Positions 1,691 through 14,368 of a stretch of DNA of 32,345 bases are shown here, piece after piece. Origin of the DNA: Octopus bimaculoides (taxonomy: Eukaryota). The stretch spans positions 2,095,642 through 2,127,986 of the forward strand of contig NC_069009.1 of assembly GCF_001194135.2 (NCBI RefSeq), in the 5' to 3' direction. Numbering within the stretch: position 1 is the stretch's first letter; each line of letters opens with the position of its first letter. Made by a program: the position numbers and the translations under genes. Under the pieces are notes generated by a model that saw nothing but the letters and a program-made list of their open reading frames with translations, was not told where the DNA came from and made no database searches.

Positions 1691-2309
1691 TATATGTCTG
1701 TGTGTGTGTATGTATATGTATGTATATATGTATGTGTATATGTATATATGTGTATATATGTATGTGTATGTATGTATGTATATATGTGTATATATGTATA
1801 TATATATGTATGTGTATATATGTATATATATATGTATGTGTATATGTATATATGTGTATATATGTATGTATATATGTGTATATATGTATGTATATATATG
1901 TATGTATGTATATATATGTATGTATGTCGTCCCGTCTGAGCAAGGATATGTATGTGTGTGTTTGTTTGTTTGTGGCTTGTATATCTGGAGTGTTTCTCAA
2001 ATTTGTTTTTTGTTTTCACAGGCTGGTGAACTCTGGAAGAATAACGGAGCTATCATCATGGTGGTCCGTCGTCCAGGATGATCCATGTGCAGAGAGGTAA
2101 ACACTTCTATCATTTATATATATATATATATATATATCCCATCGTCCTCATCACCACTACTGGAGTGGCTGGCATTAGGAAGGGCATCCAGCCATAGAAA
2201 CCATACCAGAACAGAAAGCGGAACCTGGTACAGTCCATAGCCTTACCAGTTCTGGTCAAACCGTCCAACCCATGCCAGCATGGAAAACGGACATTAAATG
2301 ATGATGACG

Positions 2310-2378
<69 letters not shown>

Positions 2379-5300
2379 TGGGTGGCTGTGTGCTAAATAG
2401 CTTGCTTACCAACCACATAGTTCTGGGTTCAGTCCCACTGCATGGCACCTTGGGCAAGTGTCTTCTACTATAGGCTCAGGCCGACCAAAGCCTTGTGAGT
2501 GGATTTGGTAGACGGAAACTGAAAGAAGCCCGTCGTATATGTGTGTATATATATAGATGTGTGTGTTTGTGTTTGTCCCCATAGCATTGTTTGACAACCG
2601 ATGCTGGTGTGTTTACGTCCCCGTAACTTGACGGTTTGGCAAAAAGAGACCGATAAAATAAGTACTAGGCTTATAAAGAATAAGTCCTGGGGTCGATTAT
2701 GATGATGATGCTGATGATGATGTTATTGATGTTAATACACATGCTGGTCTTCTCTTTTGTTTTTCAGGAAGCGCAAGCGCTGTCCTCTCTGGTGCCTTAC
2801 TTTGATGAACATGGCTTTAACCTTTATGCCGTTGTACACGAATTGTTGGGCACCGAAGAATTCAAATCTTTTTTTTCCGGGGAATTATTTTTGGACGTTG
2901 AAGTAAGTATATATATACCCGCCTCTTCTACCTGTCCTAATTGCTGTTTCTTGTAAACTTGTATGTTGGTTCAGACAAACATGGTCACAAAGACACAGGT
3001 ACACGTAGGCATATATATGTAGAAGACTGGAGAGAAATGAAGGCAGTTCGACAACTGGCACCCATGCCAACGTCGTCTCCTTCATTGGACACGAAACTCG
3101 GCTTGCGAAGACCTGTTGGAGCAAGCGAAAGCGAAACCATGATGGCACCTGTGCCCAGCGTCGCCTTCCTGGCTCTTGCAAAGACGTTCGAGTGAGATCG
3201 TTGCCAGTGCCACTGGACTGGCTCCTGTGCAAGTGGCACCATTTTGTACATACACCAGACATCCACCATTTTGTACATATCGTTGTTGTTGGCACTCCGT
3301 CGCTTACGACGTTGAGGGTTCCAGTTGATCCAATCAACGGAACAGCCTGCTCTTGAAATTAACGTGCAAGTGGCTGAGCACTCCACAGACACGTGTACCT
3401 TTAACGTAGTTTTGATGGGATATTCAGCGTGACACAGAGTGTGACAAGNNNNNNNNNNTGGTGGAAGAGTACAGCAGGGTTCGCCACCATCCCCTGCCGG
3501 AGCCTCATGGAGCTTTAGGTGTTTTCGCTCAATAAACACTCACAACGCCCGGTCTGGGAATCAAAACCGCGATCCTATGACCGCGAGTCCCCTGCCCTAA
3601 CCACTGGGCCATTGCGCCTCCACTGTACATACATCACACATCCCCATTTTGCATGTATGCTACACATCCCCTATTTTGTAAGTATGCCATGCATCCACCA
3701 TTTTGTACATGTATGTATATGGATAAGCATAAATGTATATATAACATTTAATCCCTTTTTTCTTTGTAGAAAACATTTTATGGTCCTAAGAAACGATGGG
3801 CATCTTTTGCAGCACTTCTAAACCCTTTAGTATGGATGAATTTATGTAGAGCGAAAAAGAAAGGCGTAAGTGGTAACACATCTGGTGAAGGGAGACTTTT
3901 AGGGGGTAAGTCATCATCTGTCCTGTTTTTTTTTTTTTGTCACTGGTGTGTGGCCATTCTGGGGACACTGCCTTGAAGGGTTCAACTTAAGTGGTTCTCA
4001 AATGATTTTTCACGTCCCACCAGCACAAGTGCCAGTAAGGTGACGCTGGTTATGTATATATATATATAATAATATATATATACTATGATGGGCTCTGTCA
4101 GATTTCCTCTACCAAATCCACTCACAAGGCTTTGGTTGTTCCAAGGTTATAGGTTATATTAGAAGACACTTCCCCAAGGTACCATGATGAGGGACTGAAC
4201 TCAGAACTATGTGGTTGGGAAGCAAACTTGTACCACACAGCCACGCCAAGTTTATTAAACATATTTTGATATATTGTCTTTCATATCCAGTTTCTGTTTT
4301 ATTTATCCTCCTCAGTTACTTTTTTTTTAATTTACAAAGTTGCATTTTTTAATATACAAAGTTGCAGTCCAGCAGTTTTCAGACTTGTTCAGGTAAAACA
4401 TTAGTTTCAAGAGGCATGTTTTGATGGTAAGGGGATTAATTGTGGGACCAGAGGGGGCCCATACTGAGGATGGTTTGTCATGGATTGTGTCCAGTGGGAT
4501 TGGGTATAGCCATTTCCTTCAATCTGGAATGACAAAAATTGGCAGGTCAGCTTATTAGATTTGTAGCGAGACTAATTTCATAATTGCATGTTCAGACTTG
4601 AGTACTCCCAGAAGGGCTCCATACGCATGTCTCTAATGATTGGTTATGTGACCAGTCATGTGACACTGAAATATTTTGTTGAATCAGGCATTTTGATTGA
4701 TCTAGTTTTACATAGAATACTTAGCTTGTTTCCAATCATGTTGCACAATAGACCACCAGATGCAACAAATTAAAAATGCTCGTCTGAGCCCCTTTTTGTT
4801 AATAAATAGCATGAGGTTTTTCATTTTAATTCAGAGAGGAGAGTTTGTTTTCAGGAAGCTATGTCGCATTTTTCTTTGTTCCTGTTGAACAACTGAGTTG
4901 AAAAACCAACTGTGTATGATTTGAATAATGAACTTCCAAAATAGTTTTCACATCCTGACTGCATTCTGCAAACTAGTCATCTATGACAATCAGTATTTAA
5001 CAGGAAGTATTCAAAGTGCTATTATAGCCATCTCCTTCAATCTGAAATAGCAAAAATTGGTAGGACAGCTTATTAGATGTTGTTGTTGTTGTTGGCACTC
5101 CGTCGCTTACGACGTCGAGGGTTCCAGTTGATCCGATCAACGGAACAGCCTGCTCATGAAATCAACGTGCAAGTGGCTGAGCACTCCACAGACACGTGTA
5201 CCCTTAACGTAGTTCTCGGGGATATTCAGCGTGACACAGTGTGACAAGGCTGACCCTTTGAAATACAGGCACAACAGAAACAGGAAGTAAGAGTGAGAGA

Positions 5301-7999
5301 AAGTTGTGGTGAAAGAGTACAGCAGGGTTCACCACCATCCACTGCCGGAGCCTCGTGGAGCTTTAGGTGTTTTCGCTCAATAAACACTCACAACGCCCGG
5401 TCTGGGAATCGAAACTGCGATCCTATGACCGCGAGTCCGCTGCCCTAACCACTGGGCCATTGCACCTCCACTCAGAGAGCTACTACCTCTGTTAGTAACG
5501 AAGGGACTTCCTTTGGAATGAAAGGCAGATTATATGATGCTCCTGCATGGAAAATAGACAATAAATGATAATGATGATATACTGAAATTACTATAACCTA
5601 TATAGCAATATTTATACAGCAATTTATATAGCAATATAGCAAGGGATTACTATAATTATATAAGATCCATTACTTAGGTGACCAAGTCTGTAGTGGGGAG
5701 GGGTTCAGTCCAAAAGCATAGCTGGTAGTATAAGGATAGGCTGGGTGAAGTTCAGAGAGCTACTACCTCTGATAGTAATGAAGGGACTTCCTTTGGAATA
5801 AGAGGCAGATTATACGATGCCCCTGCATGGAAAATAGACAATAAATGATGATGATGACGATGACGATGATAATATACTAAAATTACTATAATTTAAGACA
5901 GGTAGAAGTTCCTTTCCTAAAAGAGTCTCAAAACTTCTGGAATGCACCTTGTATGCTTAATTTTACCTGCAACTTCTGTTTTGCACATTTGTCTTCAACC
6001 TTTTCCTTTTTCTTGTTTTACAGGAGTTTTCGTAATTGGTCCAGGAGAAGCGGGGATTTTGCTGGATCATCGAGAAAACAAGTTTGGAGACCACGTCAAG
6101 GCGGAGCTGATCAAGTCGGTCGTGGCACAGTTCAGGGGAACGGACAAAGACAAAGGCGGAGAAGGTACGGCAGTTGTGGAGAGCGCCGTTGATGAACCGA
6201 AGAGTGCATTTGGGGGCTTCACTGACATCACCCGTGGCGTGACCGACTCGCTGCAAGATACGGCATCTGGTGCAACGAGTCTGGCCAGCCAAGTGCAACA
6301 GAACGTCACGAGCGGACTGGATGACGCAAAGCAGAGTGCTACTGACGAGCTTGACCGTGCCAAGTCAGGTGTGACAGAAACTGGAAGTCAAATGCAGCAG
6401 GACATAGAGAGCAAGGTGGCTGATGGGAAAAAGAGCATAGCAAGCGGAATTGCCGATGCACGGAAATCAGCAACAGATAGCTACAGCGGCGTGACTAGTT
6501 CAATTGGTGATGCACAGAAAAGTGCAGTGTCGGGATTCAATGAAGCGAAACAGTCTGCAGTAAAAGGATTTGGAGATGTTCGTGGCGGAGTCACAAGTAC
6601 CATCAGTGGCGCACAAGAAAGTGCAGTGTCCGGATTCAATGAAGCGAAACAGTCTGCGACTCAAGGAATTGGCGATATTCGCAGTGGCGTAACCAGCACC
6701 ATTTCTGATACACAGAAAAGTGCAGTCACAGGATTCAATGAAGCGAGGCAATCTGCTGTCAAGGGAGTCGGAGATATCCGCAGCGGCGTGACCAGCACCA
6801 TCTCTGATACACAGAAAAGTGCAGTCACTGGATTCAATGAAGCAAAACAATCTGCTGTCAAAGGAATTGGCGATATCCGCAGCGGCGTGACCAGCACTGT
6901 CTCTGATGCACAGAAAAGCGCAGTCACAGGATTCGATGAAGCGAAACAGTCTGCTGTCAAAGGAGTCGGAGACATTCGCAGTGGCGTGACCAGCACTGTC
7001 TCTGATGCACAGAAAAGCGCAGTCACGGGATTCAACGAAGCAAAGCAATCTGCGGTGCAAGGAGCCAGTGATATTCGCCGAGGCGTGAGCAGCACTGTGA
7101 GTGATGCACAAAAGAGTGCAACATCTGCGTTCAATGAAGCGAAACAGTCGGCTGTCCAAGGAGCCGGAGATATTCGCAACAGCGTGACAGGTGCGATTAG
7201 CGATACACAAAAAAGTGCAGTGTCTGGATTCGATGAAGCGAAGCAGTCGGCCGTGCAAGGGTACAGTGACATTCGTAGCGGAATAAGCAGCACCGCCAGT
7301 GATGCACAGAAAAGTGCAGTCACAGGATTCAATGAGGCGCGAAAATCTGCAACTGACAGCTTTGGTGAAATTCGCGGTGGCGTGACTAGCTCGGTAAGCA
7401 GCGCGCAGAAGAATGTAGTATCTGGAATCAATGATGCCAAACAAACTGCATCCCAGGGCCTTGGTGACATGCAGCAAAAGGTGACAGCCTCTGTTGCTGA
7501 TGTGCAACGGAGCGGAGCATCGAGTTTTTCGTCAGCCAAGCAAGGCCTCGCCTCAGGTGTCGCCGGTGCAAAGGGCAGCTTGAACACTGCCAAGGACGAT
7601 GCGTCGAACACTTTCTACGACGCCAAGCAGAGTCTCGACGACAGCATGTCGTCAACCAAACAGGCCGTCTGCGAGAGTGCAAATGCCGTTCGTTCGGACG
7701 CAGACGCTGCAAAGAACCAAGTCGCAGGCAGCATCCAGTCGGCGAAGGACCTCAGTTCAGAAACTGCAGACAAGGTGAAACAGAGCACGACCACAGAGGC
7801 AGCCGGTTTCAAGGGCACCCTAGACAAGTTCACCAAGGACCTGCCTGGCAAGGAAGATTTCCAAGAGGCCCTAGACATGGCTAAAGAGGTCGGCAAAGAG
7901 GAAATAAAAGATGTCATTGAACAAGTGAAAACCACAGCTGGGACCGCGGTATCGGATTATACGACGCAGTTCACCGATAAGCTTGGTTCCTGGAGTTAA
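1473..7999 (+). CDS. PRXL2A: Peroxiredoxin-like 2A / selenoprotein U (FAM213A family), spliced CDS join(1473-1550,2022-2096,2768-2902,3770-3905,6024-7999) = 2400 nt, 799 aa with Sec at residue 46 and a long C-terminal repeat tail
   Basis: All four introns are GT-AG with polypyrimidine tracts and compatible phases (0,0,0,1). The joined peptide [26 protein letters not shown]|[25 protein letters not shown]|EAQALSSL...GELFLDVE|KTFYGPKKR...GEGRLLG|[25 protein letters not shown] matches recalled PRXL2A motifs (KAALEYL..LKTL, ELW..NGAVIMAVRRPGCxxCREEA, FYGP, GEG..LGGVFVVG, GILLEHREKEFGDKV) colinearly. Confidence 0.93.
1556..1965. repeat. Compound (TA)/(CA)/(TATG) microsatellite in intron 1
   Basis: Direct reading; it explains the YI/HT/CV-rich ORFs here. 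Confidence 0.97.
2022..2096 (+). CDS. PRXL2A: PRXL2A/SelU coding exon 2 with in-frame TGA (Sec) at 2079-2081
   Basis: Acceptor ttttcacag; [27 protein letters not shown]; donor gtaaac at 2097. Confidence 0.92.
2145..2310 (+). mobile_element. Family B retroposon 3' end (..catggaaaacggacattaaatgatgatg tail)
   Basis: Shared with 17330-17450, 18045-18372, 18962-19170 and 31118-31262. Confidence 0.75.
2380..2698 (+). mobile_element. tRNA-derived SINE family C (ggagtggctgtgtggtaag..ccttgggcaagtgtctt..)
   Basis: Copies or fragments also at 4086-4245(-), 11330-11523, 19516-19995, 20606-20825, 23010-23620, 26245-26920 and 32137-32296. Confidence 0.8.
2768..2902 (+). CDS. PRXL2A: PRXL2A/SelU coding exon 3
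   Basis: Acceptor tttttcag; [45 protein letters not shown]; donor gtaagt at 2903. Confidence 0.93.
3282..3622 (-). mobile_element. tRNA-derived SINE family A (Arg-like head), interrupting a ~26-bp minisatellite
   Basis: Minus-strand head GGAGGCGCAATGGCCCAGTGGTTAGGG..ACTCGCGG with A/B-box-like motifs and a (CAA)n tail; multiple copies in this window. Confidence 0.85.
3770..3905 (+). CDS. PRXL2A: PRXL2A/SelU coding exon 4 (missed by the ORF track)
   Basis: Acceptor tttctttgtag; [45 protein letters not shown]+G; donor gtaagt at 3906; phase 1. Confidence 0.92.
5079..5471 (-). mobile_element. SINE family A, near full length
   Basis: Same head, body and tail as the other family A copies. Confidence 0.88.
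5472..5892 (+). repeat. ~130-bp imperfect direct duplication in intron 4 (~5472-5600 and ~5752-5892)
   Basis: cagagagctactacctctg..gaagggacttcctttggaat..catggaaaatagacaataaatgat occurs twice. Confidence 0.85.
6024..7999 (+). CDS. PRXL2A: PRXL2A/SelU terminal exon: end of the Trx-fold domain plus ~615-aa repeat-rich extension
   Basis: Acceptor cttgttttacag ends at 6023; phase 1 completes Gly; open frame continues to TAA at 7997-7999. Confidence 0.88.
6509..7498 (+). repeat. Ten in-frame 99-bp (33-aa) coding tandem repeats, consensus [33 protein letters not shown]
   Basis: Units counted in the translation; exact 99-nt period without frameshifts; degenerate units on both flanks. Confidence 0.95.
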
Positions 8000-8047
8000 A
8001 TAGACCGTGACGATGGCAATAACGACATTGCCAGCGGAAGCTGTTGA
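7997..8047 (+). promoter_or_regulatory. Candidate compact GUGA-type SECIS element
   Basis: GUGA at 8007-8010; helix 8011-8020/8027-8036 (9 of 10 pairs); apical loop begins with AA (8021-8022); GA at 8037-8038; weak lower helix 7997-8003/8041-8047. Helix and loop are shorter than canonical. Confidence 0.4.
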
Positions 8048-8293
8048 TTGGATTATATCACCATCGTCACCATCAGCAGCAAACACACTAACACACACAT
8101 GCAGATGAATATACAAGCACATACACACATGCATACATACACATAAATATAAACGTGTATATATNNNNNNNNNNNNNNNNNNNNNNNNNNNNNNNNNNNN
8201 NNNNNNNNNNNNNNNNNNNNNNNNNNNNNNNNNNNNNNNNNNNNNNNNNNNNNNNNNNNNNNNNNNNNNNNNNNNNNNNNNNNNNNNNNNNNN

Positions 8294-8331
<38 letters not shown>

Positions 8332-9103
8332 GTTTGTATTTATGTATACGTGTATAAACACGCACACACACATATATATACACTTGCATATACACACGTC
8401 TAAATACACACATAGGTACATTGACCCAAAGATATACGTGTAAACACAAAACAAACACATATACTTATAAATGAATACATAAATACATACATATACACAC
8501 ACACGTTTCCAGGAATCAAAAATTATTTATAAAAAATAATGTTGAACAAAATCCATAAAAAAAGAATGGAGAGAAAAAGTATCTAACAACCACCAGAAAT
8601 GTGTAAAATTTAAATGAATGAAGACCACGACGAAGAAGAAGAAGAAGAAGAAAGAGGGGGGAACTCCCCACTCTCCCCTCGTTAGCTCCCCGCTAAAGAA
8701 AAAGAAATTGAACAGTGAAAAAAAAAAGAGAGAAAGAGAGAAAGCAAGACCAGATGCTATAATCTTAACTAATTGGATTCGTTCAAGTTAAGTTACCTCC
8801 CTTTGCCGTCGTCCTCCCTACCTCCCCCTCGCCTTGCCAACCACCACCACCACCACCACCATTNNNNNNNNNNNNNNNNNNNNNNNNNNNNNNNNNNNNN
8901 NNNNNNNNNNNNNNNNNNNNNNNNNNNNNNNNNNNNNNNNNNNNNNNNNNNNNNNNNNNNNNNNNNNNNNNNNNNNNNNNNNNNNNNNNNNNNNNNNNNN
9001 NNNNNNNNNNNNNNNNNNNNNNNATGTTGTTAACGGCGTTGGCTGGACTGTAACTATGACAACAGCAACAACTAGTTGTGTAAGTTTGCTGGGTTAGGCC
9101 GTG

Positions 9104-9142
<39 letters not shown>

Positions 9143-9202
9143 CATGAGTAACGTGTATATGCGTGTGTAGTGTGTTTATGTATGCCTGTGTTTATATGCG
9201 TG

Positions 9203-9250
<48 letters not shown>

Positions 9251-9336
9251 TATATAAGCAAATGTGAAGATATATACTTGTATGCATGCATCTACAAGTG
9301 CGTGTGTATATATCAAAGCATATATATCTGTGTACG

Positions 9337-9380
<44 letters not shown>

Positions 9381-9435
9381 CATGCACATACATACACAGC
9401 CCATATATAATACACATACTACATATATATATGTA

Positions 9436-9473
<38 letters not shown>

Positions 9474-12468
9474 GCAAACATGTACGTGCACTCATAAATA
9501 CACACACACACACACACAGGGATCACACGTCCCAGTTGGTGCCCCAGGCATTTTTCATTATTTCAACTACTTTCCTTAAATACTGGAAACAGAAAGGAAT
9601 CGGCGAGACGAGGAGGAGGAGGAGGAAGAGGAAGACCAAGAAGAAGAAGAGCAAGAGGGATTATCTGTCTGTGCCTCTGTGTATATCCATCTCTCTCTCT
9701 CTCTCTTTATGTGTCCCATGTCTCCGTTAATCTCTGTCCTGTTTATTACGAACGTTTCGTGTCTGTCCGCAATAATCTGCTGTAACGCCGTATACGTGTC
9801 GTTGAGGTGCATTCGAGGCCCCCCACCCGGTTTTTTTTTTCTCGCTCTCTCTCTGGACCAATGTTACCAGTGTGACATCAACCCAACTTTTCCCCACTGG
9901 GTCCACACGCGCGTACGTTCGGTCGGAGTACATTCTGGCCTCACCTGCTTTACATTACCTACCTGCCTAAACTGCCTTCCTGCATGCCTTTTCGTCTGTC
10001 TCTCCGTCTCATAGTGTCCGTCCATCTACGTTTTGTAAGTATGTGAGCGAACGCGTGGCATGCTTGCCAATGTGCCCATCCTTTGGAGCATGCAATTTTC
10101 CAAGAACAAACAGTAAGAAAGTTTAAAGAAAACAAAAATTACAAAAAAAAATTAAAAAATAATAATAATTTCCATGCATTGGTGTTGTAGTTTGGTGCAG
10201 TTTTGTGGTTATTGAGTAGTGGTAGTGATAATGATTATTATTATTGTTATTATTATTATTATCAATGGTTATTGTTATTCCATGCGAGGTCTCACTGTCG
10301 AATGACGGCGCCAGACTAAAAAGTCACTGNNNNNNNNNNNNNNNNNNNNNNNNNNNNNNNNNNNNNNNNNNNNNNNNNNNNNNNNNNNNNNNNNNNNNNN
10401 NNNNNNNNNNNNNNNNNNNNNNNNNNNNNNNNNNNNNNNNNNNNNNNNNNNNNNNNNNNNNNNNNNNNNNNNNNNNNNNNNNNNNNNNNNNNNNNNNNNN
10501 NNNNNNNNNNNNNNNNNNNNNNNNNNNNNNNNNNNNNNNNNNNNNNNNNNNNNNNNNNNNNNNNNNNNNNNNNNNNNNNNNNNNNNNNNNNNNNNNNNNN
10601 NNNNNNNNNNNNNNNNNNNNNNNNNNNNNNNNNNNNNNNNNNNNNNNNNNNNNNNNNNNNNNNNNNNNNNNNNNNNNNNNNNNNNNNNNNNNNNNNNNNN
10701 NNNNNNNNNNNNNNNNNNNNNNNNNNNNNNNNNNNNNNNNNNNNNNNNNNNNNNNNNNNNNNNNNNNNNNNNNNNNNNNNNNNNNNNNNNNNNNNNNNNN
10801 NNNNNNNNNNNNNNNNNNNNNNNNNNNNNNNNNNNNNNNNNNNNNNNNNNNNNNNNNNNNNNNNNNNNNNNNNNNNNNNNNNNNNNNNNNNNNNNNNNNN
10901 NNNNNNNNNNNNNNNNNNNNNNNNNNNNNNNNNNNNNNNNNNNNNNNNNNNNNNNNNNNNNNNNNNNNNNNNNNNNNNNNNNNNNNNNNNNNNNNNNNNN
11001 NNNNNNNNNNNNNNNNNNNNNNNNNNNNNNNNNNNNNNNNNNNNNNNNNNNNNNNNNNNNNNNNNNNNNNNNNNNNNNNNNNNNNNNNNNNNNNNNNNNN
11101 NNNNNNNNNNNNNNNNNNNNNNNNNNNNNNNNNNNNNNNNNNNNNNNNNNNNNNNNNNNNNNNNNNNNNNNNNNNNNNNNNNNNNNNNNNNNNNNNNNNN
11201 NNNNNNNNNNNNNNNNNNNNNNNNNNNNNNNNNNNNNNNNNNNNNNNNNNNNNNNNNNNNNNNNNNNNNNNNNNNNNNNNNNNNNNNNNNNNNNNNNNNN
11301 NNNNNNNTATATATATATATATATATGTTTGTGTCTCTGTCCCCGCCACCATCGCTTGACAACCGATGTTGGTGTGTTTATGTCCCCTTAACTTAGCGGT
11401 TTCGGCAAAACAGACCGATAGAATAAGTACTGGGCTTACAAAGAACAAGTCCTGGGGTCGATTTGCTCGACTAAAAGCGGTGCTCCAGCATGGCCACAGT
11501 AAAATAACTGAAACAAGTAAAAANNNNNNNNNNNNNNNNNNNNNNNNNNNNNNNNNNNNNNNNNNNNNNNNNNNNNNNNNNNNNNNNNNNNNNNNNNNNN
11601 NNNNNNNNNNNNNNNNNNNNNNNNNNNNNNNNNNNNNNNNNNNNNNNNNNNNNNNNNNNNNNNNNNNNNNNNNNNNNNNNNNNNNNNNNNNNNNNNNNNN
11701 NNNNNNNNNNNNNNNNNNNNNNNNNNNNNNNNNNNNNNNNNNNNNNNNNNNNNNNNNNNNNNNNNNNNNNNNNNNNNNNNNNNNNNNNNNNNNNNNNNNN
11801 NNNNNNNNNNNNNNNNNNNNNNNNNNNNNNNNNNNNNNNNNNNNNNNNNNNNNNNNNNNNNNNNNNNNNNNNNNNNNNNNNNNNNNNNNNNNNNNNNNNN
11901 NNNNNNNNNNNNNNNNNNNNNNNNNNNNNNNNNNNNNNNNNNNNNNNNNNNNNNNNNNNNNNNNNNNNNNNNNNNNNNNNNNNNNNNNNNNNNNNNNNNN
12001 NNNNNNNNNNNNNNNNNNNNNNNNNNNNNNNNNNNNNNNNNNNNNNNNNNNNNNNNNNNNNNNNNNNNNNNNNNNNNNNNNNNNNNNNNNNNNNNNNNNN
12101 NNNNNNNNNNNNNNNNNNNNNNNNNNNNNNNNNNNNNNNNNNNNNNNNNNNNNNNNNNNNNNNNNNNNNNNNNNNNNNNNNNNNNNNNNNNNNNNNNNNN
12201 NNNNNNNNNNNNNNNNNNNNNNNNNNNNNNNNNNNNNNNNNNNNNNNNNNNNNNNNNNNNNNNNNNNNNNNNNNNNNNNNNNNNNNNNNNNNNNNNNNNN
12301 NNNNNNNNNNNNNNNNNNNNNNNNNNNNNNNNNNNNNNNNNNNNNNNNNNNNNNNNNNNNNNNNNNNNNNNNNNNNNNNNNNNNNNNNNNNNNNNNNNNN
12401 NNNNNNNNNNNNNNNNNNNNNNNNNNNNNNNNNNNNNNNNNNNNNNNNNNNNNNNNNNNNNNNNNNNN

Positions 12469-12699
12469 GGGATATTCAGCGTGACACAGAGTGTGACAAG
12501 GCTGACTCTTTGAATTACAGACACAACAGAAACAGGAAGTAAGAGTGAGAGAAAGTTGTGGTGAAAGAGTACAGCAGGGTTCGCCACCATCCCCTGCCGG
12601 AGCCTCGTGGAGCTTTAGGTATTTTCGCTCAAGAAACACTCACAACGCCCGGTCTGGGAATCGAAACCGCGAGTCCGCTGCCCTAACCACTGGGCCTCC
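12469..12699 (-). mobile_element. SINE family A, partial (runs into a gap)
   Basis: Near-identical to the corresponding part of the 5079-5471 copy. Confidence 0.82.
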
Positions 12700-13756
12700 A
12701 CCATTATAGAGTAACTAGCAGCTAAACCCGGTCGGTTTAGCATTCGCCTTGTTTGGGCACGCTTACGTTAAAAAACAATTTTAGAATGACTTTTTTCTGT
12801 CAAAACGCTAAAAATAACTGACCGACAAAAGAAAAACCAACCAAATCAAAAAATAAACCCACATAGTAAGTGAAAAAAGATGCAAAACAACAGAAATATA
12901 AAAAAAATAAAACAAAAATTAAAAGAAATAAAAAAATAAGTCAGATATCCTTTAAATTTTCAAAGGTCAAAAAACAACAAAAAAATGAATAACCGGAAAA
13001 CATGAAATACCTCAACCTCAATGCGAAATATTACACAAAATTTAAAAACCAAAAAGAAAAAAAAAAAACCCATCTGAAACTGGAAAAAAAATAACTGAGA
13101 TACTACAAAGAATGACTTCACAAAAAATCCCACTTCCACTGCACGCACACACGAACACATTCACATACCCCCTTTTACATACATACACATATTCACAGAG
13201 TTGAAATGCTGTTTGATTTATTTTTTCAGCGTACAATTTTCATCATCCCACTACCAAGTCTGACATCACCCCTTCCTTCCTTATTCATAAACACAAGAGT
13301 ATTATTATAGTAGATTATCTCGGTAACCATGGGAGCCATGAAAAAAATACAAAGCCTTGCATCAGCTCCAGATCATTCTACACATCTGTGTAATTTTTCG
13401 CGCAATTCCACCCAGCCGTTTGACCATGAATCCCAAGACACGAAAGAATCGCCCATAGATAAAGAAACTGGAATTGATCTAATCAAAGTATAGTAATTAA
13501 GACGATTAGTATTAATGAGATTAAAAGATATAATGGATCCTTTTGGTTTGACGGGCAATTATCTGTTCTATAATACAAAATATACAAGTATACGAAGTTT
13601 GAAAGTGTTTCGGTACCAAAAACACTACATAAAACATTAATGAAAAATGTTTCCCGTCAAACCAAAAGGATCCTAAATATTTACTTACAATATATTTACA
13701 CGAGTTCAACTGCCTTACAGACGAAGCTGAATATAGGTTCCACAATATGAACATTG

Positions 13757-14368
13757 TGTGTTGTTTGTTGGCACTCCGTCGCTTATGACGACGAGGGTTC
13801 CAGTTGATCCGATCAACGGAACAGCCTACTCGTGAAATTAACGTGCAAGTGGCTGAGCACTCCACACACACGTGTACCCTTAATGTAGTTCTCGGGAATA
13901 TTCAGCGTGACACAGAGTGTGACAAGGCTGACCCTTTGAAATACAGGCACAACGGAAACAGGAAGTAAGAGTGAGAGAAAGTTGTGGTGAAAGAGTACAG
14001 CAGGGTTCGCCACCATCCCCTGCCGGAGCCTCGTGGAGCATTAGGTGTTTTCGCTCAATAAACACAACACCCGGTCTGGGAATCGAAACCGCGAGTCCGC
14101 TGCCCTAACCACTGGGCCATTGCGCCTCCACAGAGTGTGACAAGGCTGACCCTTTCAATTACAGGTACAACAGAAACGGGAAGTAAGAGTGGGAGGAAGT
14201 TGTGGTGAAAGAGTACAGCAGGGTTCGCTACCATCCCCTGCCGAAGCCTCGTGGAGCATTAGGTGTTTTCGCTCAATAAACACTCACAACGCCCGGTCTG
14301 GGAATCGAAACCGCGATCCTATGACCGCGAGTCCGCTGCCCTAAGCACTAGGCCGTTGCGACTCCACA
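13757..14368 (-). mobile_element. SINE family A full copy plus adjacent tandem partial copy
   Basis: Copy at ~13757-14130 is followed directly by a second head-containing ~240-bp segment joined at ccacagag. Confidence 0.85.

Follow-up and report, generated by a model that had tools for sequence, protein, structure and literature searches.

We identified an RNA hairpin just downstream of the in-frame UGA of a selenoprotein U (SelU) gene in Octopus bimaculoides, and comparison of SelU sequences indicates that it is probably a selenocysteine (Sec) or stop-codon redefinition element (SRE) of Sec-encoding SelU mRNAs. The gene lies in a 32,345-nt stretch of genomic DNA (the window, which here always means the whole stretch analysed), and the hairpin forms in its spliced mRNA. 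SREs are RNA structures located just downstream of a Sec UGA (PMC8704476, PMC5727441, PMC4561486), and three of their distinguishing features are present here: a coding-region stem-loop of high stability a few nt 3′ of the UGA, conserved pairing that is maintained by compensatory changes, and a link to UGA-encoded Sec. The comparative data indicate that purifying and compensatory selection acts on the structure in animals ranging from fish to cephalopods, and that this selection is tied to the UGA rather than to a cysteine (Cys) codon at the same position.

The SelU (PRXL2A-like) gene is encoded on the + strand of the window and comprises five exons separated by GT-AG introns, as determined from the splice model and its translation. 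A six-frame search of the genome (2.34 Gb in 145,327 contigs) yielded this one SelU locus and no second SelU paralogue. The N-terminal 189 residues of the product match the Pfam family AhpC-TSA_2 (PF13911, E=3e-15), and their homologues in a protein search are annotated as peroxiredoxin-like 2A or FAM213A, names for members of the selenoprotein U family. Three hallmarks of SelU1/PRXL2A membership were found (an AhpC-TSA_2 thioredoxin fold, the RRPG-U-x-x-C motif, and a TGA aligned with the Sec or Cys of the homologues), and the reading frame is open and conserved on both sides of the in-frame TGA. Exons 2 and 3 are joined across a donor reading AGAGAG/gtaaac and an acceptor reading ttttcag/GAAGCG, and this junction is contiguous in a Logan transcript from a second cephalopod-like species (L006), which confirms the splice. 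The features around the UGA are as follows.

2022–2096, + strand: exon 2, encoding ...VVRRPG-U-SMCRE (splice model; PF13911 AhpC-TSA_2).
2079–2081, + strand: in-frame TGA, the predicted Sec codon of a U-x-x-C redox motif (RRPG-U-SM-C); at the aligned position, 20 other orthologous mRNAs also have TGA and 7 have TGY (Cys).
2082–2089, + strand: 8-nt spacer UCCAUGUG from the UGA to the hairpin, of invariant length in 21 of 21 Sec forms.
2090–2096, + strand: initial 7 nt of the 5′ arm (CAGAGAG), at the end of exon 2 (sequence, fold and alignment).
2097–2767, + strand: intron 2 (GT...AG, phase 0), splitting the 5′ arm (splice model; position matches loci L022 and L038).
2768–2773, + strand: remainder of the 5′ arm, GA (outer stem) and AGCG (inner stem), at the start of exon 3 (sequence, fold and alignment).
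2774–2777, + strand: tetraloop CAAG, which varies in sequence among orthologues (fold and alignment).
2778–2782, + strand: inner 3′ arm CGCU and a bulged G at 2782 (fold; pair 13-18 covaries among C-G, U-A and G-C).
2783–2791, + strand: outer 3′ arm UCCUCUCUG, the codons for Ser-Ser-Leu (codon use in Sec versus Cys forms).

In the spliced RNA this region reads UGA-UCCAUGUG-CAGAGAG/GAAGCG-CAAG-CGCU-G-UCCUCUCUG, where the slash marks the exon junction. The hairpin (2090–2096 joined to 2768–2791; 31 nt in total, after an 8-nt spacer) consists of a 9-bp outer stem, a 4-bp inner stem, the CAAG loop and the single bulged G, and all 13 of its pairs are Watson-Crick. The sequence and splice model thus reproduce exactly the structure that had been proposed from the DNA alone (the original prediction), namely a 31-nt hairpin with 13 Watson-Crick pairs starting 8 nt after the UGA. 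RNAfold of the spliced mRNA, the check that had been suggested with it, returned the same helix as both the minimum free energy (MFE) and the centroid structure. Folded in isolation, the hairpin has a predicted stability of −19.4 kcal/mol; in a 47-nt context the value is −21.1 kcal/mol (z = −3.2), equalled by 1 of 200 dinucleotide shuffles. Among 784 segments of 48 nt taken across the 2.4-kb coding sequence (mean −9.1, sd 3.3 kcal/mol), the six that contain the hairpin are the six most stable. Both arms code for conserved residues (CREEA and LSSL), and we therefore held the encoded peptide fixed and redrew its synonymous codons in 5000 recodings; the −21.1 kcal/mol threshold was reached by 0.08% of them under the codon usage of the gene and by 0.24% under uniform usage, and only 4 of 20,000 synonymous recodings placed all 13 pairs in register. 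From the shuffles, the coding-sequence segments and the recodings, we conclude that the hairpin exceeds what either chance or the constraint of the peptide would produce. An extension of the stem, in which a GUG 5′ of the hairpin pairs with downstream bases, occurs in some species but is not conserved and was excluded from the element.

Orthologous mRNAs were collected by contig retrieval and a metagenome scan, giving 21 distinct TGA forms (including that of the window) and 7 TGT or TGC forms. Two of the 21 Sec forms were spliced in silico from genomic loci, and the 19 Sec-form transcripts were used for codon analysis; the sample was confined to metazoans for Sec-SelU genes and to Sec forms for gene structures. 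In the protein search, many products of 133–143 residues began with M/LCREEA and others had W at the Sec position, two patterns that arise when a gene caller terminates at the Sec UGA or translates across it. The hairpin was found in the same register in all 21 Sec-form mRNAs, including a fish-clade sequence, the second cephalopod-like species and many invertebrates, with the common layout UGA-8nt-YGY AGR GAG GAR GCN nnn nnN CUN UCC UCY YUN. The loop sequence was not conserved among them.

Covariation was examined in an alignment of 60 columns (A2) containing 273 pair cells, with controls in which the 3′ partners were slid by 1–3 columns and with 500 column shuffles. Among the Sec forms, in-register pairing reached 93.8% of the 273 cells, compared with 37–58% when slid; there were 12 cells with double changes, at three pairs, and none of the 500 shuffles matched the observed covariation score or paired fraction. 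Pair 1-31 is C-G in 15 sequences and U-A in 2 (C-G to U-A in L006 and L038s), pair 4-28 is A-U in 17, G-C in 3 and G.U in 1 (A-U to G-C in L014, L016 and L050), and pair 13-18 is C-G in 9, U-A in 5 and G-C in 2, with a C-G/U-A switch between the near-identical sister sequences L012 and L013. These compensatory events are scattered over the tree, and the outer stem was predicted independently by RNAalifold. The original prediction had staked the SRE on conservation of the pairing in Sec-encoding orthologues, and all 21 keep the hairpin, with compensatory changes.

Codon choice within the hairpin is strongly restricted in the Sec forms. Normalised synonymous entropy was 0.41 in codons +3 to +13, compared with 0.87 elsewhere (Mann-Whitney p=2.7e-5). 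Outside the hairpin, invariant Arg, Leu, Gly and Val columns each use 4–6 codons among the 19 Sec-form transcripts, and synonymous sites there are therefore saturated. Within it, Ser+11 is TCC in 18 of 18 transcripts, Ser+12 is TCT in 16 of 19 and TCC in the remaining 3, Glu+5 is GAG in all 19, and Arg+4 is AGA in 14 of 19; a covarying TCC at Ser+12 occurs in three of the four sequences with AGG or CGG.

Restricted codon use was also seen directly beside the UGA, outside the hairpin (window 2076–2082; A2 columns 4–10). Of the 19 Sec forms, 16 have GGA as the codon preceding the UGA and 3 have GGG; GGC and GGT are absent there, and all four Gly codons occur in other invariant Gly columns. Cys forms have GGA, GGC or GGG before TGY. 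Immediately 3′ of the UGA, 20 of 21 Sec forms carry U or C. The aligned sequences suggest that the immediate UGA context is under selection in addition to the hairpin.

The homologues that carry Cys in place of Sec provided a comparison set, albeit a small one of seven sequences, and the hairpin is lost in six of them. Synonymous entropy in the Cys forms was 0.78 in the hairpin codons and 0.72 elsewhere, indicating no suppression; in-register pairing was 63.7%, compared with 35–46% when slid, with no excess of covariation; and the mean local MFE was −11.1 kcal/mol, compared with −20.0 kcal/mol in the Sec forms (p=0.004). Examples of the 3′ arm in these sequences are TCC AGT ATT, GCT GGC ATC and ACG AGT CTG; the Ser-codon positions are occupied by AGT, ACT, GGC, ACA and others. 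A maximum-likelihood tree built with named references, in which many deep nodes are weak, placed Cys forms with caenogastropods (L058, L062), a scorpion (L059) and a nematode (L020), and placed the Cys form L015 as sister to the Sec form L017, so that at least five Cys lineages are separate in the tree. The same tree placed a Sec form (L049) within the fish/amphibian clade and grouped the window with L006. The seventh Cys form, L061 (JGI Ga0509103_002630, TGC), has a perfect hairpin (−26 kcal/mol) and is sister to the Sec forms L012 and L013. Judged from its sequence and position, L061 may be a very recent Sec-to-Cys conversion, which would explain its hairpin because a recent change would leave the structure behind; no Sec insertion sequence (SECIS) was found in 500 nt of its 3′ untranslated region (UTR).

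Several observations weigh against interpreting the hairpin as an SRE. The Cys forms largely keep the 5′ arm (UGC AGA GAG GAR), with AGR for Arg in seven of seven, so that slow decay, or constraint from the 5′ splice site or from a purine-rich exonic enhancer, may account for part of the conservation of this arm. The apparent independence of the lineages depends on a tree with many weak nodes, and the Cys sample comprises only seven sequences. The loop is not conserved in the SelU hairpin, unlike the SELENON SRE, which is loop- and spacer-dependent. Finally, a pattern-and-pairing scan of the window and a search with an IUPAC pattern detected no SECIS, and neither did a covariance model derived from the SelU SECIS elements of four orthologues, although this model is too specific and recovers little beyond its own seeds. 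Rfam likewise found no SECIS, either in the whole window at gathering scores or in 7900–13500 at E≤10. Because no SECIS was found in this gap-ridden 3′ region, the Sec status of the window's gene rests on homology.

One alternative explanation is that the pairing is a by-product of peptide complementarity combined with splice-site or exonic enhancer constraint, with no RNA structure under selection. The peptide C-R-E-E-A...L-S-S-L is indeed complementary at the codon level, GAR (Glu) facing UCN (Ser) and AGR (Arg) facing CUN (Leu), and the residues of both arms are conserved in Sec and Cys forms alike. The AG/GT exon end stands at the same position in three lineages within a purine-rich AGAGAG/GU, and both the persistence of the 5′ arm codons and the residual in-register pairing of the Cys forms are consistent with such a constraint. 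However, fewer than 0.3% of recodings that preserved the peptide were as stable as the observed sequence, double changes preserve the pairs, and the 3′ arm, which lies 15–23 nt inside exon 3, has synonymous sites that are frozen in the Sec forms only; moreover, a splice-site constraint would be indifferent to UGA versus UGY. We consider a by-product of this kind distinctly improbable. It is somewhat easier to imagine, but still unlikely, that the structure is selected in connection with Sec for another role, such as binding a protein of the SBP2 or eIF4A3 type, modulating the exon junction complex (EJC) or nonsense-mediated decay (NMD), or affecting mRNA stability or localisation. The comparative data establish selection linked to the UGA and not a mechanism, the stem spans an exon junction, and selenoprotein mRNAs are NMD targets, with two more introns lying downstream of the UGA in this gene. 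On the other hand, the invariant 8-nt spacing would put the helix at the mRNA entry channel, as in known readthrough stimulators and tested SREs, and the variable loop offers no sequence-specific site for a protein.

The missing SECIS raises the further alternative that, at least in this genome, the hairpin drives decoding of the UGA by a near-cognate tRNA without a SECIS, in the manner of the hymenopteran readthrough element (HRE) of SPS1-UGA, and the SELENON SRE is able to promote readthrough by itself (PMC4561486, PMC6844570). We regard this as the least probable of the explanations considered. At least four runs of N follow the stop codon (8165–8293, 8864–9023, 10330–11307 and 11524–12468) and could hide a SECIS, and orthologues with the same hairpin carry SECIS-like elements, six transcripts in total: one in L054 scores 34 bits with Rfam, just below the gathering score of 35, and the pattern-and-pairing scan found CUUAUGA...AAA...UGAUG elements in L007, L009, L018 and L051 and another SECIS-like element in L050. 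In addition, the U-x-x-C redox motif needs Sec or Cys. A mini-hairpin directly 3′ of the stop codon (8007–8038), with a GUGA-10nt-AA...-GA arrangement, has the tandem G.A/A.G pairs of a SECIS on paper, but it is shorter than known SECIS elements, has no Rfam match and faces a competing helix when 7990–8095 is folded, and we rejected it. Sub-threshold Rfam matches to miRNA families (mir-297 and mir-466, for example) are driven by microsatellites and spurious, and no other credible family was matched.

If the hairpin is an SRE, its position suggests how it might work. The base of the helix is at +12, counting the UGA as +1 to +3, and the helix would therefore sit at the mouth of the mRNA entry channel when the UGA is in the ribosomal A site. 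There it could slow the ribosome or disfavour termination mediated by eRF1, and the delay would give the complex of SECIS, SBP2 and eEFSec-Sec-tRNA time to decode the UGA as Sec; such decoding would also limit NMD of the SelU mRNA. Both the effect on recoding and this physical mechanism are proposed by analogy with the SREs of SELENON and SELENOP.

Because intron 2 splits the 5′ arm, the stem exists only in spliced RNA, and the separate exon 2/intron and intron/exon 3 contexts of the unspliced RNA fold unremarkably (about −9.5 kcal/mol each). A phase-0 intron follows AGAGAG at the same position in the genomic loci L022 and L038, so that the stem is assembled by intron removal in those lineages also, as had been proposed for the window; exon 3 begins at the same base in the further loci L035–L037, L039, L047 and L026. 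The original prediction went on to suggest that recoding is coupled to correct splicing. While its central claim is supported by a hairpin that is real, covaries in the 21 Sec forms and is degraded in six of seven Cys forms, nothing that we found supports coupling; an ancient phase-0 intron inside the stem explains the layout, and no coupling is needed because ribosomes meet spliced mRNA anyway. The intron is probably an old feature of the gene whose position in the stem is incidental. We give very little credence to a splicing-gated signal, in which the SRE would depend on the exon junction, located 15 nt after the UGA, and the intron would have been retained to coordinate recoding competence, EJC removal and NMD surveillance in the first round of translation.

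SRE-type structures have been listed for SELENON, SELENOT, SPS2, SELENOP and "some other" selenoproteins (PMC8704476, PMC4561486, PMC5727441), and stem-dependent stimulation of Sec incorporation has been demonstrated in reporter assays for the SELENON SRE and SELENOP SRE1 (PMC8704476, PMC5727441, PMC4561486), for the latter with disrupting and compensating mutations (PMC5727441; PMC4561486). In the SELENON element the sequences of the loop and spacer also matter (PMC8704476). Like the SELENON (SEPN1) SRE, the SelU hairpin is a conserved coding-region stem-loop a few nt 3′ of the UGA that overlaps conserved codons, and the role proposed for it, to disfavour termination and promote Sec insertion, is the same (PMC8704476). 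Unlike that element, it belongs to another gene family, in which sequence homology is not expected, and it has a variable loop, a 5′ arm split by an intron and an 8-nt spacer. The abstract of Howard 2005 reportedly names structures in SPS2, SelH, SelO and SelT and gives the SEPN1 spacer as 6 nt. The SelU hairpin resembles these structures and SELENOP SRE1 in being a coding-region helix beside a Sec UGA found by comparative analysis; it differs from that set in adding a natural control, the decay of the structure in Sec-to-Cys lineages.

Other stimulators of recoding offer partial parallels. Readthrough stimulators with spacers of at least 8 nt are placed so as to delay termination (PMC13517186), and the SelU hairpin shares with the Moloney murine leukaemia virus pseudoknot and the stem-loops of alphaviruses and coltiviruses a spacer of about 8 nt and an entry-channel position with the stop codon in the A site (PMC13517186). 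Whereas those viral and cellular stimulators act with a near-cognate tRNA, the decoder expected for SelU is Sec-tRNA acting through a 3′ UTR SECIS. Bacterial SECIS elements (bSECIS) are likewise hairpins within the open reading frame immediately 3′ of the Sec UGA, but they are obligatory SelB-binding elements with a conserved apical loop, whereas the SelU gene is eukaryotic and intron-containing and the loop of its hairpin varies. Because eukaryotes use a kink-turn SECIS in the 3′ UTR, the SelU hairpin would be at most accessory. Mariotti et al. have speculated that SREs and the HRE descend from bSECIS (PMC4561486). The proximal stem-loop (PSL) and SPUR of SELENOS are also accessory cis elements near a Sec UGA, and the PSL is reported to encompass a splice site (PMC6844570); the PSL, however, lies in the 3′ UTR and inhibits recoding. 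No SRE in SelU was found in the papers searched, including the main surveys of vertebrate and metazoan selenoproteomes, which agrees with the statement in the original prediction that none was known to its author, although the original SRE papers may mention one. We therefore regard the SelU hairpin as a probable newly recognised example of a kind of element that is already known.

SREs set the efficiency with which UGA is read as Sec; few have been tested (SELENON and SELENOP), and one of these elements causes myopathy when mutated in humans. If the SelU hairpin is an SRE, it is an old, short and sharply defined example, with a fixed 8-nt spacer, a stem of 9 + 4 bp and no loop requirement, and the erosion of its stem in Sec-to-Cys lineages is a built-in evolutionary control. 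It could serve as a model for how a helix at the mRNA entry channel biases termination versus Sec insertion, and as a practical marker for annotating Sec and Cys forms of SelU and for dating Sec-to-Cys conversions.

The remaining exons of the gene are as follows.

1473–1550, + strand: exon 1 of SelU (PRXL2A-like), from the ATG (splice model, translation and exon-by-exon protein match).
2768–2902, + strand: exon 3 (splice model).
3770–3905, + strand: exon 4 (splice model).
6024–7999, + strand: exon 5, containing the end of the SelU domain and then a repeat extension of ∼610 aa, with the stop codon TAA at 7997–7999 (splice model, repeat and Pfam scans).

Past the SelU domain, exon 5 (6165–7996, + strand) runs without a stop for ∼610 residues composed of ∼33-aa repeats, which include a tandem repeat at 6508–7339 (+ strand) with a 99-nt period and 8.4 copies. 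These repeats give a borderline Pfam match to the amphipathic-helix repeats of Apolipoprotein A1/A4/E, scoring 90.2 bits where the cut-off is 90. The fusion of SelU to the repeat tail is also transcribed in the cephalopod-like L006, and the other homologues retrieved have no long amphipathic repeat tail.

The window is also rich in microsatellites and interspersed repeats. An interspersed repeat of ∼350–400 nt occurs in five copies on the − strand (3580–3610, 5428–5458, 12666–12696, 14088–14118 and 14324–14354), two of them within SelU introns 3 and 4. Its head is tRNA-like, with an A-box and a B-box-like motif (GGCCCAGTGGTTAGGG...GGTTTCGATTCCC), and no tRNA was called there by ARAGORN; the repeat is probably a tRNA-derived short interspersed nuclear element. 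A second repeat family, with the sequence ...GTTTGACAACCGATGCTGGTGTGTTTACGTCCCCGTAACTT.GCGGTT.GGCAAAA.AGACCGATA.AATAAGTACT.GGCTTA.AAAGAA.AAGTCCTGGGGTCGAT..., is present inside intron 2 (2380–2700) and downstream of the gene (11330–11460). Long microsatellites lie at 60–290, 1560–1920, 2100–2135, 2310–2380 and 9100–9520, with (GATA)n upstream of the SelU gene; those of introns 1 and 2 and of the 3′ region consist of (TA)n, (TG)n and (TATG)n.

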